64,000 nucleotides of DNA from Podarcis gaigeae (Eukaryota). Numbering within the stretch: the stretch's first letter is position 1; the number at the start of each line of letters is the position of its first letter. The stretch lies in the NCBI GenBank assembly GCA_964106915.2, contig OZ066921.1; one strand, written 5' to 3'. This document shows positions 19,806 through 64,000 of this stretch, one piece after another. A program made the position numbers and the translations under genes. The notes beneath the pieces were generated by a model. It saw only the letters and a list, made by a program, of their open reading frames with translations, was not told where the DNA came from and did no database searches.

Positions 19806-19813
19806 CTGCAAGG

Positions 19814-19847
<34 letters not shown>

Positions 19848-31090: not shown

Positions 31091-31147
31091 TTTTGCACCC
31101 AAAATGGACTGTGAATTTTCATGATCAACACTGAACATAGAAGATAA

Positions 31148-36200: not shown

Positions 36201-37298
36201 CAATGGCAGAAGCAGAAGCCCTGAAAAGCCACCTGCGGACAAAGCCCTCTGCCCAATTATCCACCTCCCCACCCCAACTTCAGATGACGATATTGTGAGC
36301 AAAATGAGTTAGGTCTAGCTAGGCGGGGAAAATAACTTTGTAAGAGCAGAGAAATGGCTGAGTGAGTAAAAAGCACATTGCAAAGCTGTCTTGCATCACA
36401 GCGGACTCCAAAATGCCCAGCCAAAGAAATGCTGGATGAAGTGGACAGCAGAACTGGTTGGGGCAATGCGGAAGGTCAGAAACTGACCGGTGAAGGAAAA
36501 GGAGCAGAGGGTGGCAGTGGAGTGGGTGGAGCCCCAGGGTGGGACTTTAGAATCAGTTACCTGTTTCTCTTAGAGCAGTAATGGCTTGTGGGAAATTTGG
36601 GAAATGGGGGCTCCTCCCTTTTTCCAGATCTCTCATTTGGGTTGCAAAGCAAAAAGAGAGAGAAGGCCCAATAAGAGAGACACCCCAGAGCATGTGGCCT
36701 GCAACTTAACACACTGATTTGTACTTCGAAAGAATTCAGCTCCTGAAAGAGGCAAACGGAACAAGATTACTTTGGAAATGGTGGCTGTGGCTGCCTTGAC
36801 GCAGACCACATGTGATGCGTTATTTTCTCATCCCTGCTCTCTTGGACAAGTTTAGACAAGTGGTGACGGGTGTCTTAAGTCACATGGACTTCTTGAGAAC
36901 TGGGCTGCAGCAACCCTTTCTCCCTCCCTTCTTCAACAGGGCCTCCCCAGCCTAATTCCAGGCCAAACTTCCTCTTTCTATCCCTCTTCTTTGTGCAGTG
37001 AAAGGCATTTGTCTGCTGGTCGTTTCCCTTCCTCCCAGCCTTTCAGAGTTTCTCAAGAGTTCCTCCTACTGCTCCTGTTGCTGGCTTCTCTCTCTGCTCC
37101 CACCTGCCTTGCCTCCTTGGGTGGCTTTCTTGTGCTTAACCCCAGATTGGCTTTCCAACAACAAATCCACCATTCTCTTTAGCCTCACTCTTTGAAAGTC
37201 TCTCCCTGGTTTTGTTTCCACCTCACTGAAGGATCTCAGGCCCTGATGCTGGAGGGAGATGCAGGATTTGGCCAAGGCATGAGAAGTCCAGGTTAAAC

Positions 37299-37358
<60 letters not shown>

Positions 37359-40224: not shown

Positions 40225-40589
40225 GGGATGTGGATGGCGTTGTGGGTTAAACAACAGAGCCTAGGACTTGCTGATCAGAAGGTCGGTGGTTCGAATCCCC
40301 GCGACGGGGTGAGCTCCCGTTGTTCAGTCCCTGCTCCTGCCAACCTAGAAGTTCGAAAGCACGTCAAAGTGCAAGTAGATAAATAGGTACTGCTCCAGCG
40401 GGAAGGTAAACGGTGGTGTGCTGCCCTGGTTCGCCAGAAGTGGTTTAGTCATGCTGGCCACATGACCCAGAAGCTGTATGCGGACAAATGCCAGCTCCCT
40501 CGGCCTATAGAGCGAGATGAGCACGCAACCCAACCCCAGAGTTGGTCACGACTGGACCTAATGGTCAGGGGTCCCTTTACCTTTTCCTT
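40225..40589 (+). mobile_element. Sauria SINE, duplicate of 10380-10744
   Basis: No differences from copy 1 seen by eye, including the TSD. Confidence 0.92.
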
Positions 40590-43500
40590 TAAGGCCTAGC
40601 TGAATTGAGAGACACCCCACGTCCCCCTTGCACGCTGGGAATTCTCATTTTGCAGCCCTGTAAAAATTGCCAGGCGAAGGGAGAGAATGAGGCGGTGCAG
40701 TGGCATTTTCTACTGTAGGATACCAAACATGGCATCACCAGCAAACGTATGGGACAATCAGTAAGCAAACATGTTGCTTTTTCTTTTTCAAATCCCAGCT
40801 CGGCAGCACACAACTGTTCTAAAGGTATTGTATCGAAGGGAAAGCTCCCTCACCTTTACCAAATGTGCCAATAGATTTTGCAATGGGAGAGTCCAATGGC
40901 ATCAAAATGGGTTCCGCTGTCTAAAACTGGTGTCCACTCAGCATTGAGCAGACCCTGCCACGCACACACACTTGTTACAAAGTGTGTTCACATAGGCGTG
41001 AGGCCATTCTCCAGCCCTCTTCAAAAGCAATTCTTCTGCATCAGCCCAGCCTTGCATTTGTGAATGGGAGGCTTCCTTGCCCACAGTACTGAGGCAGTGG
41101 ACAGACTTCTATTTTCTCAGAATCCTGTACACTTCCACTACTGGATTGTGAAGCCACACACACACAATGGTGTCAGCCACAATCCACATATTTCCTATAG
41201 TTTCTTGAGAAATACTGTATTTTGATTCCCTCCAAACCAGCTTCACTTCAATCTGAAATCATAAGCTTTCTGAAGCCATCCCTGCCCACTGGGGAGGACA
41301 GGCAGGCAACTTGGAAGCACAGCCCAGCTATGCTGATGCATACAAGAAAGTACAGAGCTGAAATGCAGCTGGGGGAACTGGGGTCAACCTTGCTGCATTT
41401 TAGGCCAGCAATGTGTTCACAGCCTGAGGATCAGCCAGAAGAACTTGCTCTAGCACATTGCTCTTCCCACTGTTTCTGTATATGCACATCAACCCTATAA
41501 GCATGCATGGACCTTCTGTCAGTTTAACTACCACAAGTTCCTCAGCAAGGGATTCTGGGTGTTGTTTTGATGGTGGCGTTGAGAAATTATCTTGATGGGG
41601 AACTTTAGGATTCCAACACAGAACTATCTGCCAAAGAGTTCACTGAGTAGAGGGAATGGCTATTAATCCAATTAAAAAACTACTATGTAGCTAATAAGCT
41701 CCTGCTAGACAGCTACAGAAATAAATGTGACAAGCTCAACACCTGCAACAGGATAGGAAGACATATTCCGGGAAGGTGTGGTCACCACTTGAGATGTAAG
41801 ACTTTCAGAACTGTTGTGGGGTGTGTGGGTTTGTTTGTTTTTGAGGAGAGGGTTTTTTTCTGGACATACATCAGTGGGTTTGTTCACACCAGAGTTTATT
41901 GTGTGTTTGCAGCTGTTTGCTTTTCCATTTAATTTGCATTATCTACATGATGCTACCCTCAAACACCAATCTTGATGCTTTGTCCCTATAAATTCGAGTT
42001 TTCCCGATACAGGGGGAATGTAATGTTGGGGGAAAGTGCAATTCCAACTGCAGTAGTTTGGAGCCCAAACTATTTATTTAGGGGTGGGCAGATCTCTTTT
42101 CACTTTCTGCTACTCACCTTTCCATGCTCAGTACTATCTCAATACCTTCATTTCTTTTCCAGTCATGTTCTTAATTATTTCCACTGCACTCCTGAATTGT
42201 GTACAGCCTTGTGGTTTTTTGATCTCTCAAATTTGCACAGAACCAGAAAACTGTACAAGCAAACCACACACACACACAAATCTGCACCAAATACTGCACA
42301 GTATCAATCTCAAAGTATGTGCTGAAAACATACAATTGCTTTCATTTCTTTTCTGGCACACTCCTGAATGGAGGAGTGTAGCCTTAGATATTTTCTTTTG
42401 ATCCTTCAGATTTGCACAAAGTCAGAAAACTACCAAAGTGCGTGCTAAGAATTAAAAATTGCCTGCCAAGTTATCTGTACACATGCCCTGTGAGTATTTA
42501 TTCGGCACAACTGAATCAGCAAATTAGAAGGCAGGGGAAAACGCAAAAATGTCATGCCTACTGACATGAAAAAGAAAGATAAAAGTTCTTCCTCATAGGC
42601 AAATTCATGTATATGCAGCCGTGGACTAATTCATATGTGGGGCGGGGGGGGGGAGTGTATTAACAGCTCAATAATGCTCAGTTGTGGACAAACCCATGAT
42701 TAAGTCACTAAAGGACTCAGCAGGGAATGAAAAGAAAGCTATACAAGAAATCTTAAGGACGATTTTCTTCATCTCTGCTGCCAGCTTCGAGGAGGAATGT
42801 TGCCATTGAATCTTGCTGGCTACTCTGATGTGGTTCACATTTTTAAATAATGATATAACTAAAAGAATATATGAAATAAAATCTCATATCCGAGGCAGTT
42901 CCAAGAACAAGATGCCCAGCAAACTGCAAGATTGGCTGGGTGAGAACAGACCCCCACAACAAATGAGGAACAAGGACAGCATATCCTCTAACTGTGCAGA
43001 AAGCAGATAAGATGACGTGCTTGGTCCTGGAGCGTCTTCCCCAGCACTGCTGCTGGAGATGGACATTCTGCATGCAAAGCATGTGCTCTCCTGCTCCAGA
43101 CACATGAAACTACCTGATTGTAAGCCAGGCAGTGGATCTTCATTTCTGCTTAGTGCTGCCTGCTCTGATTGGCAGCAAGGGCTCTGCTGAGTCTCTTTCC
43201 CAGTCCTGCAATCCAGCAGCTCACATCCAGCCCTCCTCTCTTTAGCCCCTACATTTCCACTGACTTTCAGAAGTCATTCATGGAGCAAGATGTCGGCTTT
43301 GTAAGGACATGGAAGGAAAAGAGAGCCTGCATGATGCCAATGCAGTTGTGTGTGTTTCTCTCAGGTCAGACCTGGGCTGCCTGATCCAGGCTGGGGGCTT
43401 CTCCCAGATCCTGAACTACAGTAGACAGCAGCTACGGGTAGCCTATCAGTATTCATCAAATCCATAGACTTCATACTACCTGCCAATGGCAAGGGCAAAT

Positions 43501-44180
43501 CCTGTGCCTTTAGAGGGGCCACCCACCCACTATGTTTTACTTGGCTGAGCCCTCGTCCCCCAGTACCTGATTCCTGGCCTGAAGTGCTGAGAGCCAGCGC
43601 TTCCTAGGCTAGAGCAGGAAGCTCTCACTCCTTTCTTCCCTCCAGGCAGAAGAGGAGAAAGTCTGTTCAACAAAGCACTGAGGCCTTGTGCTGGATGGAG
43701 CCTCACTTTCAGGCTATGGGCAATTTTGTATAGACAGAAGCAGATACCATCCACAGAGAATGTAGCTAGGTAGGCTCAGTACAGCTGCTACTGGCGGTGG
43801 GGGACAATGGGACAGAGATTTCTGCCCCATTCCCTCTCATTGATCAGCATGCCCCATGATGGATGGACAGGAGTATTCCCTCCCCACCCCTGCTCTGTTC
43901 ATGCATCTGTAACAGCTACTGCAGGTAGTACGAAGCAGCGGTGTTAGTAACCGCAACAGTTAGTTGTGGCATGGTCAGTTTCCCCGATTCAGAGAGAATT
44001 CAATGGATGTGAAACTTCATGGTCATCATCTCAGCTGCAGCCCCATGCAAGCAAGCAGAAAGCAAAGAGAGAGAGAGACATATATATATGTGTGTATATA
44101 TGTATATATATATAGTGAGATATATATAGATATATCATTTTAAATGGAAGAGAAACAGTCCAGCAGGCAGCTAAACTCAC

Positions 44181-44211
44181 CCTTTTGTACCGCCTATGGT
44201 CCACCAGAGGG
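44181..44211 (-). CDS. CAMTA1: CAMTA1 31-nt exon, copy 2
   Basis: Matches 14334-14364. Confidence 0.9.
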
Positions 44212-45597
44212 CTTCAGATGCGCAAAACGATAGCAAAGAGCTATTAGCATATAGATGGCAACAGGTAGACACCTTTTATTCAACAGCTTCAGATCAAGGA
44301 GGATAGGCAAGCTGCCTGCTCTGGGGAAGGGAGAGGGAGAGGGAGAGGGAGAGGGAGAGGGAGAGGGAGAGGAGAGGGTGGCCATGGTGGGGGTGTCAAT
44401 CTCAGGGGCCAGCTTGCAACAACCTACGTGCTGGGAGGGTGGGGCTGGTTGAGTAGCACCATACAATATTGAGCAAAACTCAAAGGCGGGTCTATTTTAT
44501 TGGAGCTGGGTGGGAAGTACCATTGAGGTTCCAAGACCCTCCTTCTCTGACTCAGAAGACTAGAACAAGTTTTCTTAGAAAGACTTTGTGATAATCAGAA
44601 AGAAGGTGTTCCTTAACTGTAACCCCAGGGATATGGTGGGCTACGCAGCAAGAAGTATCCAAGCCATTGTCAAAACCTTGTAGCCATCTTGGCTCACTGA
44701 CCAAAACTTCACTTTCTTACCAAGGTTCAAATTAAGTAATGAAAATCCATTAATCAGAATCAAAATTCCGATTAACAACAGATTCAACAGAAGGGTGCTG
44801 GCCACTTTTCCAAAGGGCCCTCTTCCCTCTGCTTCTTGATCCCAATATGCCGTTTTGCCACCTGAGGTGTTTTCTGCTGGAAAAAGCTAGTCATGCCTTA
44901 TTACTTGTTTCAAAGCCAAACTAGTAATTTCCTGGGCACAGGATGTGAAGAAACACCAGCAGATGGGGCTACAGGTATGACATCTGGACTGCCAATTGTC
45001 CCCTGGTGTACCTGCTAGCCCCTGGTGTACATCCTTAAAAAGTGCTGTCAAGTTCAAAGCATATTCAGGGCTTATCCAAACTTCCTCTTGTTCCGCTGCT
45101 TTCCTCTGGGGAAAACCGCTCTTTAGCACTTAATGGGAGTGCAATTTGGGTTTTCTCTGGACTGAAGTTTGCTCTGATTTAGAACTAGGCAGTGGGTTTT
45201 CCGTAGGAAAGGAGTGAGACAAGTGGAAGTGTTGATGAGCCCTTGGAGTCGGGCTATCACAAGCTAAAGAGGCTACCACTGTGCTTTGTCATATCGCCAT
45301 TTGTCCCTTCCATAAGAGGGTTTTTTTTTTGGGGGGGGAAGGTTTGCATCTCACCCTCACGTATGGTGGGAAGAATGGTACAAAATACACAAACAAACAC
45401 AGAGGCCATTGTGGGAGCAACTCCTATAAACCAGAATGTTGTCAACTAATACATGGGCAGTGGTTATTTTGAAGGTAGTATATTCTTGGAGCTCCAAAAT
45501 CTTTTAACAAAGTCTGTCAGACAAAGATTCTTCGAGTAAATGGAGCAGAGATGGCAATACAGGTGAATTAGTATCTAGTTAAACAACAAAAGACATC

Positions 45598-45997
45598 ACA
45601 TGAGAAGGGTCTGCTGGATCAGGCCAGTGGCCCATCTAGTCCAGCATCCTATTCTCACAGTGGCCAACTGGATGGTTATGGGAAGTCTACAAGCAGGACT
45701 TAAAAGCAGTCTCCCCTCTTGCAGTTTTCTAGTGACTTGTATTTAGAAGTATTACTGTCTCCAATTGGGGAGGCGGAGCATAACCATACTGGCTATTAGC
45801 CACTGATAGCCTTATCTTCCATGAATTTGTCCAATCCTCTTTTTAAGCCATCCAAATTTGTGGCCCTCAATGCCTCCCATGGGAACAAATTCCATAGTTT
45901 AATTATACACTGTCTGAAGGAGTACTTTCGTTTGTTTGTCCTGGATCCTCTAACATCCAGCTTCATTGGATGTCCACGTATTCTAGTGTTACAAGAG
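45598..45997 (-). mobile_element. CR1 3' end, duplicate of 15751-16150
   Basis: Same ORF at 45796-46119. Confidence 0.88.
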
Positions 45998-46724
45998 ATG
46001 GTTATTACATCAAGATAATATTGGGGTCTTTTTGTTAGGACTAATAAGAATGGACTAAGCAAACCTTTGAATTCTCCAGAACTCTCTGTCCTATTCAGAG
46101 TAGACCCACTAAAGTTCATGGGAATGACTAATTAAGGTTCATTAATTTACACGGGCTTACTCTAAAAAGAGCTTAGTTGGAATATCCCAAAGGCTGTACT
46201 GTTTGGGGGCTTCTTATTTTAGATAACAGAAGAGTAAGAAGTAGGTAGGGATGAGATGGGGTGAAATTAGACAGGGGGGTTTCCTTCCTTCTCTTTCTCT
46301 CACAACAGTATAATTTGGGGTCGCTCTGAACTTGGTGGGCAGTAGATTCAGGACAGAAAAAGAAATTACTTTTGACACAGCATGTAGTTAGCTTGTGGAA
46401 TCTGATTCTACCAAATGTGGCTTCAGTGGCTTTAAGAGGGGATCAGGCAAATTTATGGGGGTCGAAGAGGCCTGCATTACTGATTTCAATAATGGGTTGT
46501 ATCTAATGCTAGTCCAATTCGGAGTACACTCATTGAAATTAAGGTAACAAATTGAGCCATGGCTATTAATTTCAATGGGTCTGTTATGAGGAGGGCACAA
46601 CTCAATAGTTTTAAAACTCATTTCCTCAGTTGTATTTGCTGAAAAATGTGCACACTCATTAGTTGCTATAACTATTAAAGCATCTTGGTCTGAGACTGAA
46701 AAGTGCTTTTATGTACCACAAAAC

Positions 46725-46736
46725 CTGTTGCTCTCT
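46725..46736 (-). CDS. CAMTA1: Candidate 12-nt microexon, copy 2
   Basis: Matches 16878-16889. Confidence 0.4.
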
Positions 46737-48038
46737 CTGTGCACAAGAAAAGAAAAAAATCATAGAATATGACTTACATGAAGACTAAGAAGGCCCCGTT
46801 TCAGCTAGAAGGAGCTGGTAACAATATGATTCTACAGATCCAGCCCCACTGAGCACTGAGTTCAGTGGAGCTTACTTCTAAGTACCGGTAAGTGGGTATA
46901 GGATTGCAGACTCATTGCCTTGAGAAGCTTTGAACTGTTGCTGGGAGCCATGAAGGCATCATACAAAGGCTTGTCAACCTAAGACAGCTTCTGCACTTAA
47001 GTGACTTCTCACCACCCCAGCCAAAACTAAAGGTGAAGTGCACAATTCCAGCCTAGCAGCAATTCTACCTGAAGCTTGGCTGCCCATTCAAACCCCACAA
47101 TCTTTGTTGGTTGCACTCATTTGCACTCTGCAGTTTCCAGCATCACCCAACTAGTCCTAAATCTGAAATGACATACTTTATCTTGGGTCATATGCAGAAA
47201 GGCTCTTAGTTCTCCTTCTGTTCCTTTTTAGCACACCCACCCAGTCACTTTCCTCTTTCCTCTCCCTCCTCATGTGCCAAACTCTGAAATTTCAGGTGGC
47301 CTTTCTTCATCCTGAAGCAACAGGAACACCTCCCTCTACACCCCACTGCTTGGACTGATAGTCCTCTTGGGATGGATCCCACAGAAGCAGGTCCTATTGC
47401 CATACCTGGGGGTACCAAGACTTACACTGTCCTGGGATGGAAAGACAGGGGGCTTTTTTGAACCTAAAAAACAATTTCTGCAGACATTGAGCCTGTCAGG
47501 AAAGGTGCTGGGTTCCTATTGACCCATGCCCACATCATCAAAGCATCAACTACACAATAAACTGCCAGGGCAGTTTAGTATCTGATTTTTGAAATGATCA
47601 TTAATATTTCTTTAAGGTATAGGGAACCACTAATATAAATATACAGTATACATCTGTATATGTTTAAAGGCAGGCAGCTCCCTGAAGCATGTAAGAGGGT
47701 CCAAACCAAGAGCAGATCTAGCACTCAACAGTGATGTTATAAAACCAGATTTACACTGTAGGCAAAGGTTCACGTGGCTGCAGCCAAGAGTGTTGTGCCT
47801 GCCTTTGCCCTCAGAGGCCCAAGTCAGCTTCCCATGGACAACATCCATGGACAAACCAACACTCATGATCCAACCAGGCTCCAATCCTCTGGGGAGCACC
47901 TGAACTTTGTTTCTTGCCACAACCATTTGCAGCCACCCATGTGATTGTCCCCACTACCTTCCAATCCTTGGTCTGTAGCCCCCAACTAGGAATCTTGGTG
48001 AGGGCACACCTAGAAAGTGAACGCTGGTGATGTCTCAC

Positions 48039-48113
48039 CTGTGGCGGCAGCGTCGTAAAAAACGCATGATCTTGCGAGCAGCTTGGTCCTGCTTCTTGGT
48101 GAGCAAGCTGCTT
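48039..48113 (-). CDS. CAMTA1: CAMTA1 exon SSLLTKK...RCRH, copy 2
   Basis: Matches 18192-18266. Confidence 0.93.
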
Positions 48114-49462
48114 CTGCAAGGAAGGAAGGAGGAGAACATCAGGGTCCAGGAGATACCAAGGAGGAAGTGGGGAGGGGGAAAGGCCATCTAAGTAAATGGT
48201 TGTAGAGCATCTGCTTTCAATGCTGAAGATCTCAAGTTCAATCCCAGACATTTCCAGTTTGCCTGGGAAAGACTCTGTTCTCCTTTCTGGAACCCTGAAG
48301 AGCCTCTGCCAGTCAGTGCAAACAGTACTGAGCTATATGGACCAACTGCCTGCCTGTGGTATATAGAGCAGTTTAATGCTCCTACGAGGGAGACTGTCCA
48401 AACTGATGTCTGTAAAAACTTTAGTACTTTTACTCATAATAAGGGAGGCTGTCTGACAAAACACTCCATGTATTTTTTTACTGTTTCTTTTTATTTTGTC
48501 TGTTTTACTTTCTCTCTCTCTCTCTTCTTTCTTTTTTATTGTCCCTTTTTGTGTGTGTTTTTATTCTTTGTTTTTCCTCCTTTTTTCCTTCTTTGGAGTC
48601 GTATGTTTGGAGCCTTTATTAAGGTCCAAAGACTGTATGTGATGGGGTGGTCGATGGTCAGTGGAGGACCCTGGGTGAGAGAGAGTGAAAGGTCGGTTTC
48701 TCAGGGTGAGAAGCTGGGAGGAGAAAGGAAAGATCCCAGGTGAGAGCTGGGAGGAGCTGCTGTCCTCTGTGGGTGGTAAAGGCTAACAATTAATTTTAAG
48801 TGAGGGCTCTGTATTCTACTTATTCAATTTGTATCTTTTGTAGTTGTAATTTTACTGTATTAGAGAAAATTTTAATATATTTATTTTTAGAAAGACCTAT
48901 AAAAAACCAAAACACTTTATGAACATGGGCCTTCTTCCTACAAGGCCTTTGGCTAGAATTTTTCAGCCACCTGCTTTGATGCATATTGATTCATTCTGTC
49001 CTTCGTGACTGAATGCCACCCTCCTGTTGTACTTACTGATCTTGCAGCCTGCTTGCATTAGAAAGCTCCCACCTATCTGAGCTGCCCTTTTGTCCCTTTG
49101 CCCATCAATGCCCCCTGCCTTTCTTAGCCCTTGCAATTGTGAGCTGGCAGGCACTCTTTGGTAACAGATGCAGAATCGTGGCTTCTGAGAGCAATAATGT
49201 TTGTTCCTATGCATTTGCTTGATTCATCGTGGGGCGGGCAGAATCTAGGTTTCCTTAGTGCATAATTTATTCTTTTACTCAAGTGCATAAGCATCAACCT
49301 CTGCCTTACACCCCCATCCATCCATCCATCCATCCATCCATCCATCCATCCATCCACTCTGTCTGGTATTGGCTGGCAAGTCAATGTGGGTGGGGGAACT
49401 GCCCAAGATCAGTGAGTACTAGCCCCTTGCCCTGTCTACCTTCTCCAGCATGCCCACCTCAC

Positions 49463-49656
49463 CTGAGCTTCTGCTGCACGAGAGCAGCCGTCCTGCGACT
49501 TTGTCTCCTCTTCCCACATTCCTTGTAGCTGCGGTAGAACTGCTGGATTAGGACAGCAGCTCTCCGGCTCTGCTGGAATTTCTTCTGTTCGTAGTAGCTT
49601 CGGAATTTGCTCTGGATGAGGATGGCAGCTTGTATCATCTTTTTATAAAGTGCATA
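49463..49656 (-). CDS. CAMTA1: CAMTA1 IQ exon YALYKKM...QKLR, copy 2
   Basis: Matches 19612-19805. Confidence 0.95.
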
Positions 49657-51764
49657 CTGCAAGGGGAAGAGAGAGAAAGAGAGAGAGAGAGAGAGACAAA
49701 GGCTGAAGCACTCCCAAAGGCAAAAATAACAGTCACTCAGGGGAAAATCCAGAGATGGGCACAGAAGAATTTCACTGCAATAACAGAAAAAGTATCCTCC
49801 TGCTTTTACTAAGCAGGGCAGGCACATAATAGGGGAAAAGACTGCACCTATAAATTCCATTCCTTGTTACCCTTAACCCCCCTCCCCTCCACTAGTTCTC
49901 CACACAAAGCAGCTCAATCCCTTGAGGATGGGCAGCTGAATATGCAAAAAAGGCTCTGCCCTGAAAATGCAGAATGTATCTCAACGCAAGGTGGATCATC
50001 TGTGGCAGGCCTTCCACATCTGTTACTCATCTCTGGATGGTGCACATGTATGTTCCACAAACTGGAAACTGACTGGACTGAGACTTTTAGGAAATATTAA
50101 TGTTTCCCAATTAAGAGTGATTTCTATGGACAATGACAAAAGTATTTCAATTACTCCTCAGAGTATGGGGGAATTTTTTATTTTTTAAAAAATCTAATCT
50201 GCTCTAAGACTTGGTTTCCATTTATTGTGTATGTGTAAGAGACAGAGAAAGCACACAAACCTGCACACTAGGCCAAATACTTCACCAATTTTCAACCGGA
50301 TAGCGGGCTGTTTCAAACATCATGCTATGCGGTTGGTCATGTTTAACATGAATGGGCAGCATCCAATGCAAGGGTGGACAACATTTCCAGCTCCGTGGGC
50401 CAGGCCCCCATTGACCAGCTTTGACAGGTAGGTGAGGACAACCCACATGTCAATCAAATGATGTCATAATGATGTCATATGGGTTATCCCACTTGCACCA
50501 GGGAACCCATGTACAAAGTGGTCTGCAAGCCCTGAGCAGCTGATCCAGCAGGCTTTCATTCTCTCACCCAACAGCTGATGCACAGGAGAACTGACGCCTG
50601 TTTTCCCTTGGCATTGTACAATTAGGGTTTCCAACCTGCCTGGAGCCAAGAGGAACCATGAGCCTTGGTTTAATATTACGTGCAAACCAGCGCCACACAG
50701 AAAAAGTGGGCTCTGTGGCTACTTGACACACAAGGCTTGCCACCATGCTAGACTGGGCCAATGGTTGATCTAGCCCCTACTGTCTGACACATGGGTCACT
50801 GAATGGAGAAACTGGGCAAGATGAAGCTGCCACTCCTTGTTTCCTGGCCGCATAAGCTACCTCTTGGGGGTAGAGTGCCTCTAAACCAGCAAAGTGTACA
50901 GAACAGTTGGTGTTTGTGACTGAGGAATCTCTCCCCGCTGCTCTACCCTAACCCACCGCCAAATTGTGCTTGAACCTTTCCCCGCAAATTGCCAAATCTG
51001 CACTGCTGCCAGATGATGTTCTCTCTCAATTCTCCTAATCAAGGAAGCAAACTGGTACGTTCTCCATATGGGGAGCAGTTTAGGGGGTCACCACACTTGT
51101 AGGTGAAGGAAGAAGGTGCTGGGAAAGAGGGGATAGGAGAGGACTCAGGCCCCCATTCTGGCCCATCCTTGGCAAATTCTGCGTGCCTGTGAAATGGTAG
51201 GAATGGAAGGCCAGTGTGCCAAACTGGAGGTGGGCTTCCAGGGACCAGACAACTTCCCTGAATTTTCAGCTTTCATTTTAAAATTTAAAAGCACCTAGCC
51301 CACTTCAATTATATAAACTTAAAGGAAAATGGGCAGGCTGTTTCTGAGCCAGTTTCTTTCCCTGCCGTCCAGAGCTTTGGCCGTTGAGTGTAAAAACATA
51401 CAAATGAAAAAGCTAAGGAAATTAAATCAGACTTCATGATTTTAACAACTTTAAATTTAACCTATTTAGCTACTTGTAGAAGTCCTTCCTTGCTTTGAGG
51501 TGATTTGCGGTCTCTCCCTCTGGCATGCACCCCAAGTGTAACTCCCTCCCCAGCAAATTCTGTGGTGCCAGGCAAGGCTCTGAAGATGTTCCCCTTTCAT
51601 AAGGGACAGGTTGCCATTCATAACAAAGCAGGACTGCTGGCATGCATGCTCCACAGCAGGATGCAACCCACGTGTGCTCTAACAAAATGGACAGACCCTC
51701 TCCTTGGCTTGCAATGAAAGTGAAAAGCTCATGAGCCCAAATGCTGGGCGTTTTCAGTCATTAC

Positions 51765-51785
51765 CTTCAAGGCTATCCAAGTAAG
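51765..51785 (-). CDS. CAMTA1: CAMTA1 21-nt microexon LTWIALK, copy 2
   Basis: Matches 21914-21934. Confidence 0.9.
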
Positions 51786-53271
51786 CTTGGGAGGGGGAGA
51801 AACAGAAAATACAAGATTAACGTTCAACGGCCTGCCATGTCAGTCATCATCAGCACAGAGTGAGGGACTCTGCCTCCTTAGGAGACCTGGGTGCCTCCAG
51901 AAGAGATTCTCTCAAAGCAAATGGGTGCTGCTGGAGGCCAACAGCCACATTAAGGTTCACCCACAACAGGGAGGGAGGAGGGTGTGCAGTTGCTGCTGCA
52001 GCAGCAATTCCATGGGGAGTCCTGCTGTGGGGTGAATGTAAGATGGCTGGGAAAGGGCTCTTTGCTTGGGAGCCTGCAGAGTTGAGCTTTACCAATTTCC
52101 TCAGAAAAAGCTCTGCCATTGGTGGTTGAGAACTTAGCCTAAATATGTGGGCCACTGCCAAGCCTCTGAAGGAAGCCATTCCTCAGCTTTTGTTTTTAGA
52201 GATTCTCTCTCTTTCCTGCCTTGAAAGTTAAACACCACAGCAATACCCCAACTTTATTGGCTATTGGGGACAGCTGCAGCAACATAACATGGAAATAAAC
52301 CAGCTCTCGCCCTCTCTCTGTGGTGAATCTCAAGCAAAACCAGTGGTTGACAATGGCTAGGATCCAAAGTGCTGTGCAAACTGAGCAGATATCTTTAGAG
52401 TCCTTCTCATAACCTCTGCTGCTCTACATTATGACACCACAGCATGAAGCATGGCAGTTTGGAAACAAAAGCAGGTTGCTGGCGGCTACAGTAAATACAG
52501 CTACATACTTGATGTATGCAACACCTAAAAAACTACCAGAATCTCAGGGCTTCAAGGCAAAAAAGGGCCATCAACGTGTGTTCGAAACTGTTCCTGGGCT
52601 GTTCAGATGGCAAGCTGGGGTGAAGATTGCTGAACTAAATGGGGTTGGGGACTAGCATGTCAGACAGATGGCTGGGATAGAATATTTCCCCCTGATAGCA
52701 GATTTCCTAAAGTCCTTCTTATACATTCCTTTCCACATAAAGAGGGCCCTGTCCTCCCTCACAACCTATCTGGCCCATTAGCTCCCATACCTTGCCACCA
52801 CCTTGAATCTGTACATTTACTCAAATACAGAAAAAATGCAAGTTAAGCTTCCATGCACATATTTACAGAAGTTTGACTCAACACATTGATCTGGGGGATT
52901 ACTCTGAGGCTTCAGGTGGAGAGGAAAGGATGAACAGGACTGAGGTCTAACAAGCTTTTTAAAAAAGTGTCATGCTATTGATTCCCACCACAACGTGTGG
53001 TCTGAGATGGTGCTGAAACTCTTTGACCATACAATGAGCTGTTGGATCAGAGGGCCTCTCTCTTTGGGGTGCTTAATTTTTTCACAAGAGGTGTGAGGCA
53101 AAGGAAGCAGGAGTAACCCAGGCTCCCTCACCTGTGGAGGCTGAAACTTGGGCACACTCCATCTTTGAAACTTCTGAAGTAGCTCTCTGCTGAGTTATAA
53201 GAAACAAAGCAGTCCAGGGTGGCTTCTCACACTTGCCTGGTGGTACTAATATAAAGCCATCTGCAGCTCAC

Positions 53272-53343
53272 CTGTTTGTATTTCCGGTAACAACGCTGAA
53301 TGACAGCAGCGGCCACTTCCTGTTGCTCCCGGAGGGGGCGTCC
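53272..53343 (-). CDS. CAMTA1: CAMTA1 exon GRPLREQ...KYKQ, copy 2
   Basis: Matches 23421-23492. Confidence 0.95.
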
Positions 53344-53936
53344 CTGCAAGGGAAGGGGACAAATGGTAGAGGTAACGGGACTGCAAGCAGGACCTGAGTG
53401 CCACAGCATATAAGTGCAACTGCGTCAAGGCTATAGATTGTTCTCTGAATACCTCAGAGAAGCACCCTGCGAGAACTGGAACTCAAAGCATGGAAAGAAG
53501 TGTGGCAAAGAACATCAGGCTGCCCAATGCAGAAGCCTCTGGAGCACCACCTGACACAACCATGAAGTGTATTTTCCTGCTCCTGCCAGTGACAGCTCAT
53601 GTTTTGTAGTGGGGAAACAAACACTACAGGAGAACATAGAGCAAACTGAACCATGTATTTGCAGCATCAGCAGGGGAGGAGGGCACCTCCCTTGAACCTT
53701 CCTGGGCCATTTTTGTTGCTGCCCCCTTTAACACATGCAGGGGCAGATTGGACAATCATGTACCAAACACCAGCCCTGGGCTTCCACTTCACTTGCTACT
53801 GTGCTCTAAAGTAACTTATTTCTGTCAGCTGGCATCGGAGTGCCACTGATTCCAAAGGGAGGTTTGGAGACTTCCATGCACCCCTGATGCCATTTCCCTG
53901 CACCCACCCCTACCAACAGCGACTTCTGCCCTTCAC

Positions 53937-54183
53937 CTTGTATTTCCTGAAAACCGTCTGGACCAGCTTGGCAGCCTCGTAGAGCTCTCTCTGCTCGTGA
54001 TCGGAGAGGGTCAGCTGCGCAAACTCGTTTTCGACTTTCTCGCTGGTGGAGGCGCTTAGGAATTCTGTCCAGTCTGTTGCCGAAGGGAGGCTGGGCTTCT
54101 CAAAAGCCATTTCATTGACTGGTGAGCTTGCAGGGCTCAGGCTGGTGTTGGAAGAAGGGGTCAGGGGTCCAATGTACAGGCTT
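53937..54183 (-). CDS. CAMTA1: CAMTA1 exon SLYIGP...FRKYK, copy 2
   Basis: Matches 24086-24332. Confidence 0.95.
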
Positions 54184-54891
54184 CTGCAAAAAGAGGCACA
54201 GGGGGAAGAGGGTCATAGCTGCACAGACACCAAGACATGCTGGCTGGCTGGAGAAAAAGAACAAATCCAGGATTTGGTTCAGATTAAGGGTGGGGAGGGA
54301 CAAGTGAGTTGGTCACATTTGAGCCATACAGTGAAAGCACATGGTTTCCCCAAAGAATCATCGGACTGTAGTTTACCTCCTTACACAGCTATGATTCCCA
54401 GCACCGTTAAACTACACTTCACCCTCTCTGAGGCAGGGGCTAAGGCTTGGTGACCCAGAATGCACCAACCCTTGTTGAAACAGCATGAAAACATGCTGCA
54501 TGCTTACTATTTAGCATTCCAGTGATATTTATCTCACAGTACTTGAGGGTTAAGGGTTGAAACTTTGTTGTAACTAGTTAACTTGCTCCACACCCAGCGA
54601 ACCTGAATGGAACCTGTCTCAGGGATGTTCTGAATCTTTACTGGCTTGACTCAGAAAAACAAAGTGGATTAATTTTAGCTGCTGTAACCCAAAATTCAGA
54701 AATGAACTAAAGCATCTAACAGCTGGGCACTGGGTAGGAGATCCCCCCCCCATATGGCAGCACCAGCAGCAACAAGGAGCCCCCCTTTTGCCTGGTGGGT
54801 TTTCAATTTCGCAAGGTGAGGGCCAGAAAAGTCAATATGGGCCAGCGGGCATCACAAGCTTGATCAGTCCTGGTAATACAAGGCCACAGAC

Positions 54892-55079
54892 CTTATTTGA
54901 GCAGCACTTGGTAAATGGTCGACATCCGCGAGGTAACTGGCCAGCCAGCTCATTGAAGTGCTAATGGTGGCGCTCTCCGTCCTCTCGGCTGGTGGCGCCT
55001 CCATTGGCACAAAGTTTTCCCGCTTGATCCTCTCTGGGGTCGCTTCGATGATGTGCTCTGCCAGAGTCATCATGGTCAC
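54892..55079 (-). CDS. CAMTA1: CAMTA1 exon VTMMTLAEH...QIR, copy 2
   Basis: Matches 25037-25224. Confidence 0.95.
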
Positions 55080-57029
55080 CTGTGAAGTGAGAAGGAAAGC
55101 TTTTCAGGGGCATGTGGGTGGAGGCAAGGCGAGAACAGCACTTCCCACCATCTCCCTTCCTGTTGGGTCCCAGAACCTGCTCCTGTCAGACCGAGGAGGA
55201 ACGCTGTACATAAAATGCTTTTGCTTGGGTTTTGAAGGTAAAAAGTATTCTGCAATTGGCAAAGGTCAAGGCCTTGTCCCATTAAACGACGTTGCAAGCC
55301 TGTTTAGCAGTAGCTGGTGATGACAAGAGAATCTTATTATGCTTGGTTCAGGTAAATTCATTCTGATTGGTCTGTGTGGCTGACAGCAGACTCTGATTGG
55401 CTGGAGATTCTCATCAGTTGGGAGTTAAACGTCAGTTGGGCCCCATTTGCCCTCTACATTTAAACCATTTTAAACTGTCATGGCTTCACTCAAAGCATCA
55501 TGGGAACTGCAGCTTGCGAAGGCTGCAGAGAGTTGTCAGAAGACCTATTCCCCTCACAGGGCTATAATTCCCAGAATGGTTTAAGAGTCAGTCCCTCTTC
55601 CCAGGAAAACTCTGGGAATTGAAGCTCTGTGAAAGAGGGGGAAAGGGGTGTTCTAATAAGTCTCTGCACTTTTATCAAACTTAACTGTTCTTGGGATTCT
55701 TTGGGGGAAGAAGCCATGCCTGTTTAAAGTCACATTTTGGTGCTTTAAATGTATCATGCAGGTTGGGTCTTAAGAAAGAGTCCGTAGAATTTTGACAGTT
55801 GAGGGAAAAGGAGATCAATAAGAGGTGTGTGAAGAAAAGACAAGAGAAAGAAAGCTGAGGCATAAATACTATTGCCCAGTGTGTTATTAATACTCATTTG
55901 ATGACAATGAAGGGAAGGAAGTTAGCTTGAGAGGCTGCCCTGTGTCAAGGTCTTCCTCTCACAAGCGGGTTTTTGAAGTTGACCAAACAGTCCAAACAGC
56001 CAGGAGTATAGTTTTCCCCCAGGAGCTGGAGTGGGTGGTGGGCAAATTTGTATGTGGTGGATGTTTAAGGAATTTGGGTTGAGGTGAAAGAGGCTGGGGT
56101 CAGCAACAGCAGCACTTTGTGAGTCTTCAGAAAGTGTCAGCAAGCACCTTTTAGACCCCTTTGCAAATATCCATATTTCTCTCAGGCACACAGCATTCCC
56201 CTTAAGAAGCCAGACATCTTAGTCAGGAGTTCATCCTGTCTCTAGTGTAAATGTCCACCTCACCCCTAAGCTGGCTATATCAGCTGTTGAAAGCTGTTGA
56301 ACAGCTGTTGAAAGCTGTTCTGAGTGTGTTGGTAGAAGTGGGAAATAAAAGCAGCACAGCTACCTAAACCTTTGTTTATTATACCACCAAGGCTGAGGGA
56401 ATTGGGTTCCGTGATAGTCAGCCGTAAAAGCAGAGCCTCCCAGTCCCTCAGAATAGCAAGGAGGGCTGACATAGAATATTTTAAATGGTCAGGGAATATC
56501 GCCTGACCCACCTTGGCCTTTTTTGCTCTACTGAGGGCCACATGCAGTGGACAGACCCCTTGCCCTCTTTTACACTCACATACATGCTAATAGACACCAA
56601 TTCTTTCCTCCTATCCTTATTTATTTCAGGTGTTTCTATTCCAGGCCAGGTTCAAGGTTCTTCTGCTGATATACAACACCTTGAGCAGCTTGGGCCCAGG
56701 GTACCTTGAGGACTGTTTGAACCTTCATATATCCCAGCCTGATCACTGAGATTATCCAGGTGAGCACTGCTAGTTGCTCCCCCATGTTACAGAAGCCCAA
56801 TGGGCCTCAACCAAAAATTGGGAGTTTAAGTGCCCCAGGTTCCATGCTGTGGAATACTCTTCCAGTAGAGATTTGGCAACGACATTCTCACTTCCACCTT
56901 TTTCATGACTTTTTAAAAAAATGTTTAAACCACCTCTTGCATAGCTAGTCATTTTAATGATTGTTTTGTTTGCAGTGCTTTTGATATTGGATGGTTCACT
57001 CCCCTGGTGTGTGTTTTATGAAGGCTCAC

Positions 57030-57544
57030 CTGCAGGTCATCCATGTGATGCAAGCAGTCCTCACTTTCTGTGCCGTCTCGGAAGGAGAGGAGCTCTGCGT
57101 CAGCCACCTCCCGCTCCGCCATCATCAGCACGCTCATCTGCTCCCGCGGATGGAGCCGCTGGGCCCCTGAGTCCTTCCCCAGCGCCAGCCCCTTGGGGCT
57201 GCCTGCCACCTGCATCGCAGGCACGCCAATATACGCCTCCTTTGGGCTCCACTTGGCCCCTGCCTGTGTGCCGGAGCCGTGGTAGCCAGCCACTTCGGAG
57301 ACAAGCTCCCGCGCATAGTCCCGCACCCCATGCCTGGGGCTGATTGTCTCTGGGAGGGATTGCTTAGCACTGGAGCTTGGCTTCCGGGCACTCGGCTGCT
57401 CCAGGCTCAGGGCGGTGGAAAGAAGCTTCTCCTGCCGAGCAGAGAAGTAGTCGGGGTTCAGTTTGTGTTTTTTGGGCGCGGGGTACTCCTTCTGGCTCTC
57501 GCTGCTGTAGTAACTGGAGGGCTCGGACCGGGGCCGCCTCAGCT
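57030..57544 (-). CDS. CAMTA1: CAMTA1 exon (E)LRRPRSEP...DDLQ, copy 2
   Basis: Same translation as 27175-27689. Confidence 0.95.
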
Positions 57545-58447
57545 CTGGAACCAAACAGAAGACAAGTGAGGATTCAGCCATGCAAGTGTGCATGTGCATG
57601 CACTGCTCCCATGAAATGTGCCCTGCGTTCACTCTGCCAAAGGAACAATGAGGCTCTGGAGCCCTGGCAAGCAAGTGTCCAAGCTGGGGAACAGCAGAGC
57701 ACCTCTGCACCAGCTCTGTATGGAGACGCACGCAGGCCCTCTCCTTATGACAGAGGGGGCAGGCACCGTAGTTTCCCCACATATGTGAATAGCATCCCGG
57801 TGTTAAAGGACACATTTGGTGGACACTGTTGAGAGGGAGCAGAGCTGGTCTCTAAACTGGCCTCATCCTGAGTCTGTTTCTAGATCATAACAGGAAGGCA
57901 AGGGTCTAGTTGTGATAAACCAAGAGGACTCAATCACCTGCACTGGAGAACAGAACTTGTTAAGCTGGGGTACATAGAGGGGCTTGTGCCTGTGTTCTGC
58001 TGTTGCACTGCCCCTTCCCTCCTCAGTACCAGATGTCAGGTGTAAAGTAACCATAGCTTCCCATTCCATATAAACCAGGAAACCATGGTTGCCAGGGCTG
58101 GCCCAAACCAGGTTCTGAAACCACAGTAGAAGTTTGTCTCAAAATCTGGTGTGCCCCCACCCTAGTAACCAGCATTTCCCGGTTTGGACAATAAGGAAAT
58201 AATGGTTAACCCCTGAAGTCTTCATGGTGTGCAGCAAGAGCAGAAGAAAGAAGTAGATGGAGCCAGCAGGTAGAAGCTTTGTGCATAGCTCAGCTTATTG
58301 AGCCAGGATACTGACGTCCAAAGTTAGCCACTGTGTGATCGTCCTAAGTTTCTGGGAAACAAATGAAGGAGGAGGAGAATGGGCCAAACCTTTTCTCCAA
58401 GGAATGTGATGGAGGCCTTTCAAACAAAAACAACAACAACATCCTAC

Positions 58448-58763
58448 CTGTATTGGAATTGGAAACCACGGTGACTCCCTTCTGGGGCTCCTGAGAGGCC
58501 ACCATCTCACTGTGCCACTGGGCGATCCAGTTCTCACTGCTGGGTTCCTCATGCGAAGGACAGGGGATCCGGGGGGTTTGCCTGAGTTGGGCTTGCTCCT
58601 CCCGCTGCAGGTGCTCGAGGCACTCGGCCAGCTTCACGTGGCCCCGAGAACGAGCAATAGCCAAGGGGAGCCTCCCGAGGGAGTCGGGGATGGAGATAGC
58701 GCGGCGGTCCCACTTGTAAAGGACAACAGCTGCATCCATGTGGCCCAGCGCGCATGCCCACAT
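58448..58763 (-). CDS. CAMTA1: CAMTA1 ankyrin exon MWACALGH..., copy 2 (I>V variant)
   Basis: As 28594-28909 except c58466 vs t28612 (KGVTVVSN vs KGVTVISN). Confidence 0.95.
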
Positions 58764-59107
58764 CTGGAAGAAAAAAGAAGTTGGGTGGGCAAGGAAGAAA
58801 AGGAGAGGGGACTGTGGCAGAGTACAGGACCCACTCAAAGAACCATCTGTTTGTAGGCTTGTCAAGTCTTGGTGTGTGCACTCCAGGATATGACAGCTCC
58901 ATTGTTTCACATTCAAGTCTCTTGGAGTTGGACACAGCTGGCAAGCCTACTCCATCACATATGCTCAGGGAAAGGGAGTGGCATGTTAAGGATGCAAAAC
59001 TTGTGCAATGATCCCAGTGGGAAACTCATGCCACCCTCTCCCTGGTTACCACAAGCTGCAAAGAAAAGTGACTTTGAGCACCTCGTGGGCAGGCCGTGGC
59101 TACTTAC

Positions 59108-59186
59108 CAGCGGTGTGCAGGAGAAATGATCCACGTTCAAGGGGTCCACTTCCAGCTCTAGGTCGATGCTGTCAGCATGCTTGGTA
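59108..59186 (-). CDS. CAMTA1: CAMTA1 exon TKHADSID...TPL, copy 2
   Basis: Matches 29254-29332. Confidence 0.95.
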
Positions 59187-60062
59187 CTGGGGGCCCAAGA
59201 AGGAGAGTAGTCATTTGGGGCTGCTTACTCAGGTGAGGGGGGAATCTTTGCCCCCCCCAATGTGGGTGGCAGCTCGACTGTGGTGCTTTTTTTTTTATTA
59301 AGTTACTTGCAAAAAAAATTGTACTTTTGAGTTACATATTGAAGAGGGGGAAATAATAAACTAAACATCCTCCCTAGCACCCCCCTTTTACCCCACCTAA
59401 AGACATAGTTTAGATCTAAATAATAACAGTAAAGTTTGTATAAGCACTGGAGTGGAGAGAGTCCGAAGGTTGCTGATGTCAATATAAAGAAAAATCTTTT
59501 TTTTACAGAAAGTGCCATTTCCCAAATTACACTGTACCATTTTAATACATTTAAACACTTTGCTTCTTTCCAGTTTCTGGCTAGCAATGTTCTTGCTGCC
59601 ATTTACTAAGTCTTAGTTCGTCTCTGCTGAATACACCTAAAAATGTTATTTCCAGTGGTTTCTTTCTTCTTCTTTTTTACAGGTTTTCCCAGTATTTTTG
59701 TTACTTCTACAAATATTTCATCCCAGAACTAGGCAACTTCAGCACTTTACCACCACATGTGTATGAAGGAACCATGAACTGGACTTCCCCTGCAGCACGC
59801 AGCTGAGTAGGATTTTAGTGCTTTTTTAAAAAAAGGCATTAAATGCCATTTTTGTATTATTTTCAAATAATTTTATTTTAGTCTTGAATTTGTTTTGCAA
59901 AAGGGGTAGTCAACTAGTCACTTGGGGGCTTCAACAGCCCTTAAGGGGTTCCTACCAAGTCCCCAGGACAGCTCTGAACCCCAGGAGCTGCCTCCTCCTA
60001 TGTAAGTGGCATAGCCAAGTGCCCACCCCCAGAACCTGCCCCTGCACCCCCCGGGTTCTTAC

Positions 60063-60259
60063 CGCCATTTAAGGAGAGTCTGGATGAGGGTCGCATAGCC
60101 CTGGGCTGCTGCCAGGTGCAGGAGGGTCATCCCCCGGAAGGTCTTGGAGTGGATGAGGTGCTTGGATTTGGCCCAGCAGGCCCTGCTCATCATCTTCTCA
60201 CACACAACCACCACACGGCTCTCAAAGCAGTTCCCCAAGGTGGCTGCCCCTGAGATGCA
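60063..60259 (-). CDS. CAMTA1: CAMTA1 exon CISGAAT...KWR, copy 2
   Basis: Matches 30209-30405. Confidence 0.95.
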
Positions 60260-61417: not shown

Positions 61418-61566
61418 CTGTGCTTGGCTACCTCCATTGCCGCTGCCGTTGCCCCCACCACCACCTACGCCTTGCTTGTGCTGCTGCTGCTGGGACCCAG
61501 TCATTTCGGCCATCCTCCGCTCCATCTGCTCAAGTCGCTCCAGGATAGACATCCTGAACTGGTTCT
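61418..61566 (-). CDS. CAMTA1: CAMTA1 exon (E)NQFRMSILERLEQ...SQAQ, copy 2 (contiguous with upstream unique intron)
   Basis: Matches 31564-31712. Confidence 0.96.
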
Positions 61567-62279
61567 CTGCGGCAACACAGGAGAGAAACAAGGAGAAAGA
61601 GAGTGAATCAGAGGGCTACTCCCATTCATGACATGGGGAGCAAAAGCAAAAGGCAAATCATTGACAAAAGGGTCCCAAGTCTTGAGAAGTCTGTAACCAC
61701 AAGGATGCATGTGGAGGAATCTGGGGGAATCAATGTGCTAGCAATTCTTCTTCTGCTCTTCTGCATCACACTGTCCTGCTTCTGAGTGCTTTCTTGGGTT
61801 TTCTCAACCACCCAAAACAGAATCAGCTTCTGTATTTAAACATTCTCAAAAAGAAAGCAATGCATGCCCAGGGTCTTTGGCACCTTCCAATGGATAGACC
61901 CAACAACAGCTAGCAGGCATGTAGGCTAAATGAGCCCTCCAAGTCACAGGCGTTTATCTTTGGATACCAAGGCACTGAGGATGGCCAGCTTGCATCCTTC
62001 CAAAAGCCTTAGTGAAACAGTGAGGAACCTCAGGCCTGGGGGACTTATGCAGCCCTCTTGGTGCATCTGGCACCAAGAGGACCACATAAGTCTCTGCACA
62101 AGCCACACCCACCACCGACCCTACTCTGCACTCTCAGGATGCTTCTGCCCTTGAAATGTCACAATGCATCTTGCTTGCCCAGATTTCATGTAGAAATCGT
62201 TCAGTCAACCATGTTACTTTTGAGTCACTGACCCTGCTTCTCTCTCAGGTGGGGGAATAGTGACGGAATTATATTTAGG

Positions 62280-62770
62280 GTACCAATGCCTTTGGAAGAC
62301 TGACAATCAAATGCAGAATGCAGCTGCTGGATTGGTGGGTGAAGCAGCCCCAAGGGGCCAAGCATCACCAATCCTGAAAGCGCTGCCCTAAACAGCCGGG
62401 ACCCAGGTAACCCCCCCCTTCAAATATCAACTATCTCAAGCCCTACAATTGGTGCTGCCACTTCTGGTAGTTGTTCAACTGGCACTGACTAGCGACAGGG
62501 TCCCTTTGGTGGTGGTTCGCCATCTGTGGTCCTCCCTGGTGAGATGCCTCTGTCTCTCTCAAAACTAACATTTAGGAGGAGTTTAAAAAACATTTCTATT
62601 TGATAACTGAGAAATTCTGATTCCACAAAGCTTGACATTATTAGCTGTTCTTTTCAGATGTCCTTAATTGCTTTAAATGTTTTATCTTATTTTAAACTAC
62701 ACTGTTGTTTGTCTCCCTGGGATCTTGGTGGTGCTGGGGGACAGAAATATGACAAGCAAATAAATATAAC
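62280..62770 (+). mobile_element. Old L2-clade LINE 3' remnant
   Basis: tgcagaatgcagctgctggattg (QNAAA-like), catcaccaatcctgaaag, a T-rich tail region and an aaataaat end. Confidence 0.5.
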
Positions 62771-62876
62771 CTAGTTGGCCATTCCCCTACCCCAGATTCT
62801 TCCAGGCATCACCCACATGTTTGAGGGCCTAATATCTGCAGCCTGGAGGGGAAGGACTTTGCTGTACAGCATAACT

Positions 62877-63130
62877 ATAGAATGACAGAGCTGCAGGACA
62901 TCTAGCCCAACCTTGTGCAAGGCAGAGATCTGCAACTACAGCACCCATGACAGCACCCTAACAGTATAGATAGAGCCCATCACCCCCAGAGGCTGCCTTG
63001 CTTCCACAGTGGAACACCTTGTACCATGAGGGGCATTCCTCCTTCCCATTTGCACCTTTGGCCTCTGGGCCTGCCCTCTGGAGCAAGGGAGAGAATCCAC
63101 GTACTCTACTTTAGGTGATGGTCATCAAGT
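62877..63130 (-). mobile_element. Old CR1-like 3' remnant
   Basis: atagaatgacagagctg...catctagcccaacc...cccatcacccccagagg...ttccac resembles an antisense CR1 3' end. Confidence 0.45.
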
Positions 63131-63389
63131 GATGAACCTGCCTGGGGGAAAACCAGCTCTCCCATGCCCCAGGATAAATCCAGCTGGGGACTGAGATCCC
63201 TGACACTGTCAGATTTCGACGGGGGGGGGGGGACACTCCCTCTCTTGGGATTTCGCTCCACTTCCAGGGTGGCAAATCAAGGCAGGCAGTTCCACAGGCC
63301 ACCTCTTCCGGCTGAGTAGCCTATTTTGGGGGAGCACAGTTTGCAAAAATCACCCGCCCGCCATCTAGCTGTATACTAATCACACTATT

Positions 63390-64000
63390 GTCTAAAAATC
63401 GGCCCCGAGGGTCAACCAGTTCAAGGAGGCCTGGCACTTCCTTGGAGCGGGGGACGGGGCAGGCTTCACCACTTTCTTGCTCCAAACGCTTTCTCTCCCC
63501 GTCCCCCGCATTTCAAAACAAGTTTTCTTACATTTCGGACGCCCCGAGGGAGAGGTCGCCGCCGCTGCTGGCAGTGGGCGATCAGGAGCCTGCTCCCGAA
63601 GTAGGGGATAGCGAGGAACTTCCGTGGGGGGCGGGGGAGAAGAGGGCGCGTTCCTTCCCCACGTGCAGCTGGGAACTTTCCCCGCTCCTCGTCCGCGCCT
63701 GGCGCTCCCCCGGAGTCCGCTCCCACCTTCCGCGCTGGCCCCGCGGTGGCGCAAAAAAAGTGGGCAGGGCGGGAGCGAGGCGCACTTACCTGCCAGCCAG
63801 CTCGCCCGCCCGCCCGTGGGTCCCTTCGGACGCAGCCCGAGCGAGCGAGCGGCCGGCCAGCCCGCCGGGCTCTTTGGGCAGCCCTCCTTTTCCTTCCCCG
63901 CCTCTGCGCGGCCAATCCGCAGCGCGGAAAGTGACATCAGCCCCCGCTGCCGCCGGGGAGCGCCCGCTCGCCACACGCGCGCCGGAGCCAATGAGGAGCC
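63390..64000 (-). promoter_or_regulatory. Intragenic CpG island with promoter elements, candidate internal CAMTA1 promoter (runs off the window end)
   Basis: Abrupt rise in GC and CpG. CCAAT boxes at 63912-63916 and 63988-63992, GC boxes (gggcggg, cccgccc), CRE-like tgacatca at 63932-63939, E-box cacgtg at 63660-63665. Confidence 0.8.
63790..63937 (-). other. CAMTA1: Candidate alternative first exon of a short CAMTA1 isoform (5' end uncertain)
   Basis: Perfect donor GGCAG|GTAAGT at 63790/63789. The donor is phase 1 in an open frame containing the ATG at 63937, which matches the phase-1 acceptor at 61566. Confidence 0.55.

Follow-up and report, generated by a model that had tools for sequence, protein, structure and literature searches.

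CAMTA proteins bind CGCG boxes through a CG-1 domain and calmodulin through IQ motifs. Forms of CAMTA1 that lack the DNA-binding part are already known, with about 51 protein clusters (90% identity; 570-764 aa) starting exactly at the methionine of the peptide MSILERLEQ and spanning mammals, birds, reptiles, amphibians, and fish; the clusters were collected with the exon peptide and then with a 722-aa fish isoform limited to its first 110 residues. The lacertid entries are Podarcis raffonei X6 (XP_053256445.1, 700 aa), Zootoca vivipara X3 (694 aa) and X5 (699 aa), and the P. muralis UniRef entry A0A670J3V3 (693 aa). Elsewhere, the same start is annotated in CAMTA1-like X1-X4 of the boa Candoia aspera, in rat X7, in monotreme, marsupial, caecilian, and frog proteins, in a human TrEMBL entry, and in a bird cluster of 102 members around Phasianus colchicus X6. 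The short isoform is therefore not new: it stands in RefSeq/Ensembl for close relatives of the lizard considered here and for every vertebrate class. A first-pass annotation of the present DNA had supposed that related short isoforms may be annotated in mammals, which is correct, and the same holds for other vertebrates, P. raffonei, Zootoca, and P. muralis included.

A preprint reports that in humans a CAMTA1 isoform lacking the DNA-binding domain, ENST00000473578, is broadly expressed and in artery, heart, and skeletal muscle prevails over the full-length form, and describes it as uncharacterised (10.1101/2024.11.28.625692). Like the lizard form it is a CAMTA1 product without CG-1; according to the preprint it has no assignable domains, and it may be a different, shorter product. 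The literature searched yielded no functional study of a CAMTA1 protein consisting of ankyrin repeats and IQ motifs only. The arrangement of an intragenic promoter, a private first exon, and a shared acceptor is familiar from other genes, namely the internal-promoter truncations of dystrophin (Dp71 and Dp140), the short nesprins, and ERalpha46, whose products, like this one, are without an N-terminal functional module; the analogy is one of mechanism only.

The window, by which is meant the whole 64,000-nt stretch of Podarcis gaigeae DNA that was analysed, carries on its minus strand the part of CAMTA1 that encodes such a short form, together with a CpG island in the intron preceding it. With a probability of about 0.7, this island and the exon that leaves it are a real alternative promoter and first exon of CAMTA1, serving an isoform that is not novel and whose function is a prediction. 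The first-pass annotation had proposed a promoter within the island and an isoform without the DNA-binding part, both of which stand, and in addition a particular splice donor and a coding N-terminal extension, which do not. Raw sequence alone would in this case have recovered a real alternative promoter and a transcription-factor isoform that lacks its DNA-binding part. Relative to the annotated isoforms that begin at MSILERLEQ, the lizard form has the same start codon, the same exon chain, and the same ankyrin and IQ domains, and nothing essential differs; the first exon and its donor are presumably the same as well.

An intronic CpG island with a core conserved in a boa

The island and the sequence elements within it are as follows.

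63390..64000, minus strand: intragenic CpG island of CAMTA1, within the intron that separates the last TIG-coding exon (beyond the window) from the NQFRMSIL exon
63906..63943, minus strand: promoter core of 38 nt, with a CRE-like site, a CGCG-containing E2F-like stretch, and an inverted CCAAT box
63939-63932, minus strand: CRE-like site TGATGTCA, inside the conserved core
63916-63912, minus strand: inverted CCAAT box (ATTGG), inside the conserved core
63988..63992, minus strand: inverted CCAAT box (ATTGG), not conserved in the boa alignment
63815 and 63811, minus strand: two overlapping GC boxes (GGGCGG)
63772 and 63634, minus strand: CCGCCC

When the window was divided into 500-nt bins and island criteria of GC > 0.55, CpG observed/expected > 0.6, and length >= 500 nt were applied, the sole bin to qualify in the 64 kb was 63501-64000, with a GC content of 0.71, a CpG observed/expected ratio of 0.95 (0.22 for the window as a whole), and 59 CpG dinucleotides. 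The island is cut by the end of the window, so its full length is larger than the part seen. The window contains no second copy of it, Rfam has no matching family, and a scan of the window for repeats, transposons, and tandem repeats returned nothing relevant to the island. The two CCAAT boxes, the GC boxes, and the CRE-like site that the first-pass annotation had listed for its promoter are all present where it had placed them, with both CCAAT boxes inverted.

Comparison with Candoia aspera (CM068902.1, 1-10132) provides evidence for an orthologous element. The same CAMTA1 intron of the boa, between the last TIG exon and the MSIL exon, contains a CpG island of 1.9 kb whose GC content reaches 0.86, and window positions 63980-63893 align with positions 4217-4308 of the boa sequence at 78% identity (blastn, E 6e-16). 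Within this alignment the 38-nt core, 63943-63906, differs from the boa at one base, and an exact 18-mer of the core is found at boa positions 4258-4275. The alignment of the island to another amniote CAMTA1 intron, suggested as a check in the first-pass annotation, thus recovered a boa island with a near-identical core at the orthologous position. This near-identity of lizard and boa is a modest addition to what was known of the isoform, and would aid reporter or knock-out tests of the promoter. The conservation is confined to part of the island, as the CCAAT box at 63992 and the GT at 63790 considered below have no counterpart in the boa alignment (63790 is aligned to no GT), and the boa donors downstream of the core lie at offsets that match neither lizard donor. 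In the boa assembly, CAMTA1 is annotated as two models at this intron, an N-terminal one of 818 aa with TIG and a separate CAMTA1-like one of 691 aa, with the island in between.

A comparison was also made with the turtle Chelonia mydas (KB528912.1). No CpG-rich sequence and no similarity were seen in the 20 kb upstream of its MSIL exon, a stretch that in this old assembly includes a 1.5-kb gap of Ns (11910-13386) about 7 kb upstream of that exon, just where an island could be expected, so that the turtle is uninformative.

The core contains CGCG boxes, the type of motif bound by CG-1 domains, in a setting where CGCG is common throughout the island. As a lead only, the boxes in 63906-63943 might allow full-length CAMTA1 to regulate this promoter.

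Splicing of the island exon onto the shared acceptor

Two donors within the island are considered here, and the one RNA contig over them uses the weaker.

63532..63892, minus strand: alternative first exon at its minimum extent, from one RNA contig, whose end sets the 5' end; read as non-coding
61567..63531, minus strand: intron of the short transcript, from the joint in the same contig
63782..63792, minus strand: consensus donor CAG/GTAAGT, the candidate of the first-pass annotation; read through by the one RNA contig
63524..63534, minus strand: donor seen in use, AAT/GTAAGA in the window and AAG/GTAAGA in a relative; last exon base 63532

Seven sequencing runs contain the stretch or part of it, six of the seven with at least half of its words, and none is recorded as RNA. 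One of them, X1, which consists of contigs and whose RNA status is a guess, was compared to 61300-64000 together with three bulk RNA raw-read runs. X1 has one 445-nt contig over the island, on the minus strand and at a depth of 4.4, that is colinear with 63892..63533, continues with a single G, and then resumes at 61566..61486. The stretch removed, 63531..61567, has GT..AG ends provided that the G replaces a T at 63532, and the precision of this exon junction indicates that the contig derives from RNA. Over 360 nt the contig and the window differ by eight substitutions and several indels (about 97% alike, net length +3), which points to a close relative, or else to a divergent individual, as the source of the contig. 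The three bulk runs (X10-X12) contributed 2, 2, and 0 reads on the CAMTA1 exon and 0 on the island, a coverage too thin to inform.

The X1 contig accordingly displays, in one contig of a close relative, a first exon other than the TIG exon spliced to the NQFRMSIL acceptor, and the earlier expectation of a spliced transcript running from the island onto the acceptor at 61566 is borne out. The donor is not the one expected. The first-pass annotation had chosen CAG/GTAAGT, with last exon base 63790, and by a simple donor matrix this site has the top score of the 6371 GT sites on both strands; the perfect motif occurs once in the 64 kb. The X1 contig crosses it unspliced, being colinear throughout 63892..63533, and uses instead a weaker donor at 63532, with the perfect site lying 258 nt upstream of the one used. 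A 63790 to 61566 junction is thus absent from the only RNA contig over the site, which is an absence of support and nothing stronger, because assembled contigs drop rare variants and X1 can miss minor use of 63790. That the obvious consensus donor differs from the donor seen in use is a further modest addition, useful in the design of reporters or knock-outs.

The two genomes differ at the used donor itself. At base 63532 the window has T where the contig of the relative has G, giving AAT/GT and AAG/GT, and the matrix scores are 7.3 for the window and 10.9 for the relative. The same base falls in the junction codon of a long open frame that crosses the exon, which reads TAG in the window genome and GAG in X1.

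Further RNA evidence comes from outside the lacertids. A Logan contig from another amniote (L005, SRR33152339) has a CpG-rich 5' exon, noted in its region 1-96 nt, on the same acceptor, and an in-frame TGA lies 24 nt before the methionine of MSILERLEQ. This contig, from a non-human amniote, testifies independently at the RNA level to the short isoform outside the lacertids; the protein it encodes shares about 84% identity with the nearest placental CAMTA1 entries. Two other Logan contigs (L002 and L003) end before any island could be reached, and the P. raffonei X6, budgerigar X1, and Ascaphus proteins had no gene on record.

Because the X1 contig simply ends at 63892, with no mapped start, the stretch 63892..63532 might be a piece of intron retained in the full-length CAMTA1 pre-mRNA, or a cryptic exon internal to it, spliced from a cryptic donor, with the island an orphan, an enhancer, or some other promoter (antisense, for example); CpG islands within introns are often enhancers or promoters of non-coding RNAs, which lends this account of 63390..64000 some support. 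It is nonetheless unlikely. The contig crosses the 61566 acceptor and does not branch there to the canonical upstream exon, the isoforms starting at MSILERLEQ, which require a first exon that is not the TIG exon, have been annotated in three lacertids and in dozens of further species, and L005 has just such a CpG-rich, non-canonical 5' exon on the same acceptor. Moreover, every candidate donor scoring >= 6.5 in the part of the island within the window lies on the gene strand, the plus strand has none, and the conserved CCAAT/CRE core lies just upstream of the contig end. These observations favor an alternative promoter, and the island is probably an intragenic CpG-island promoter of CAMTA1 in this lacertid lizard.

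Coding content of the first exon

The first-pass annotation had the island exon contribute protein sequence, in an open frame joined in phase to the NQFRMSIL exon. The minus-strand frame is indeed free of stops between 64000 and 63395 and contains a single ATG, at 63937, and the phase is as claimed: base 63790 is codon position 1 of this frame, and the exon 61566..61418 has a phase-1 acceptor, because its first two bases complete a codon. (The exon ends at 61418, with the GT at 61417-61416, which corrects an earlier note.) Base 63532 is codon position 1 of the same frame too, so that the phase also fits at the donor seen in use. The openness of the frame says little. Shuffled sequences of matched composition contain 202 codons without a stop in 0.85% of cases, and another frame stays open over 156 codons; GC content thus explains most of the openness, which is weak evidence for coding, in agreement with the caveat already attached to it that GC-rich DNA stays open easily.

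Other properties of the exon point away from translation. No ATG occurs in any frame of 63936..63532 (405 nt), where shuffles average 3.1 and have none with a probability of about 0.04, and no new ATG is created at the 63532/61566 junction. Should transcription begin upstream of 63937, the single ATG there would enter the mRNA; its frame would then run into TAG at the 63532 junction in the window genome, and that ATG sits inside TGATGTCA of the conserved promoter core, in a poor context with C at -3. Seven substitutions between X1 and the window are listed, and all of them spare codon position 3 of the open frame (0/7, P only about 0.06); this avoidance of third positions is the opposite of a coding pattern. 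Searches of proteins of 86-273 aa returned no relatives of the exon-1 open frame (156 aa), and no Pfam family matches it. With no ATG, no coding pattern of substitution, and a frame without relatives, exon 1 is best read as 5' untranslated sequence, and the first AUG would be that of MSILERLEQ, at 61552. The fallback of the first-pass annotation, a start at MSILERLEQ giving a protein of 693-700 aa, matches the annotated lacertid isoforms of 693, 694, 699, and 700 aa.

The fused N-terminal extension fares worse. As originally put, transcripts would start upstream of 63937 and splice from 63790 to 61566, adding a 49-aa extension (MSLSALRIG...ASWLA) and an E to the shared exon. The rank of 63790 among the 6371 GT sites, the phase match, and the open frame all speak for this version, as does the 759-aa isoform X5 of P. 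raffonei, a RefSeq model with a coding first exon in phase 1 whose final G gives the E. It is all the same very unlikely, in view of the X1 contig that reads through 63790, an ATG in weak context within the promoter core, substitutions that spare third positions, the lack of any similar protein of 86-273 aa or Pfam family, a donor unconserved in the boa, and an X5 extension unlike any minus frame of 61567-64000.

The X5 isoform (XP_053256444.1) has a 55-aa N-terminal extension that runs through the same E codon before NQFR. By eye, the extension had been suspected of homology to the island frame, a suspicion that was dropped: tblastn against the frames of 61567-64000 gave no match, and local alignments were no better than those of shuffles (z < 0.5). 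In these searches no N-terminal peptide of the kind proposed came up as conserved or annotated in relatives, the X5 extension being unrelated to any frame of the window. Since that extension matches nothing in 61567-64000 and the genome is that of a wall lizard, the X5 first exon must lie outside the window; presumably there is another first exon upstream, either in the portion of the island that the window cuts off or past the island.

The short protein and its relatives

The coding exons of the short isoform lie downstream of the island.

61418..61566, minus strand: shared CAMTA1 exon with which the coding part of the short isoform opens; acceptor in phase 1, start codon 61552-61550, A at -3
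2269..60259, minus strand: remaining coding exons (ankyrin, IQ), with approximate tblastn bounds
60259-60063, 59185-59105, 58763-58449, 57545-57021, and 55082-54885, minus strand: coding exons 1-5 after 61418, from tblastn
about 54180-53931, about 53340-53270, 49662-49462, 48115-48038, and 2331-2269, minus strand: further coding exons, from tblastn

Residue 1 of P. raffonei X6 aligns at 61552, and residues 1-700 of this protein fall on ordered exons from 61552 to 2269 that are mostly 97-100% identical (tblastn), so the downstream exons are intact and colinear with the annotated short isoforms. The exons were searched one by one rather than joined into a spliced model, and under these conditions Pfam found IQ at 24.5 bits (cut-off 20.3) and Ank weakly on single-exon pieces. 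Proteins that start at MSILERLEQ have Pfam sets of Ank and IQ only, with CG-1 and TIG absent. No TIG-coding sequence occurs in the 64-kb window, which places the domains upstream of the NQFRMSIL exon beyond 64000, and agrees with the earlier statement that the CG-1/TIG part is encoded upstream of this exon.

Taken together, a plausible course of expression can be proposed. Transcription would start on the gene strand in the island, at or upstream of 63892, from a promoter probably driven by the CRE/ATF-like site and the NF-Y-type CCAAT box of the conserved core, and a first exon of at least 63892..63532, spliced from 63532 to 61566 as in the RNA of the close relative, would serve as a leader without an ATG. 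By colinearity with the annotated proteins, the product would have about 700 aa with ankyrin repeats and IQ motifs and neither CG-1 nor TIG; the upstream transactivation region is assumed to be absent also. Such a protein might bind calmodulin and the partners of CAMTA but not DNA through CG-1, and would in that event modulate or compete with the full-length factor. The role of calmodulin buffer or dominant-negative that the first-pass annotation had offered is reasonable speculation.

Short forms elsewhere reach the same acceptor from a different first exon. In fish and several amphibians it is preceded by a tiny coding exon, M-E-N/S-x-V/L/I-E followed by D-NQFR, in ankyrin and IQ proteins of about 700-720 aa, for example Xenopus tropicalis X10, Salminus brasiliensis X7, and salmonid entries (P0021, P0044, P0046-P0056, P0084, P0088-P0092). 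The fish and amphibian exon thus supplies six residues and the start codon with a phase-1 splice, whereas in the amniote annotations and in the lizard exon 1 is non-coding and the methionine lies in the shared exon. The distribution suggests that the private start codon may have been lost on the amniote stem. A larger scheme can be drawn in which a promoter switch between full-length CAMTA1 and the form with ankyrin repeats and IQ motifs only is an ancient vertebrate device, using the same acceptor from fish to mammals. The short form would then be a calmodulin-dependent antagonist or buffer, full-length CAMTA1 could feed back on the short-isoform promoter through the CGCG boxes of the core, and the unused perfect donor at 63790 could act as a second, regulated 5' splice site. 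That all of these parts hold at once is highly doubtful.

The coding exons also lie within a peculiarity of the assembly. A direct duplication of 29.65 kb, 2457-32101 versus 32302-61955, is 99.87% identical between its copies, abuts a gap of 200 Ns, and covers 11 of the 12 coding exons of the short isoform, leaving the last, 2331-2269, single. This is most likely a false duplication introduced in assembly. The NQFRMSIL exon has its second assembly copy at 31712, and the island is unaffected by the duplication.
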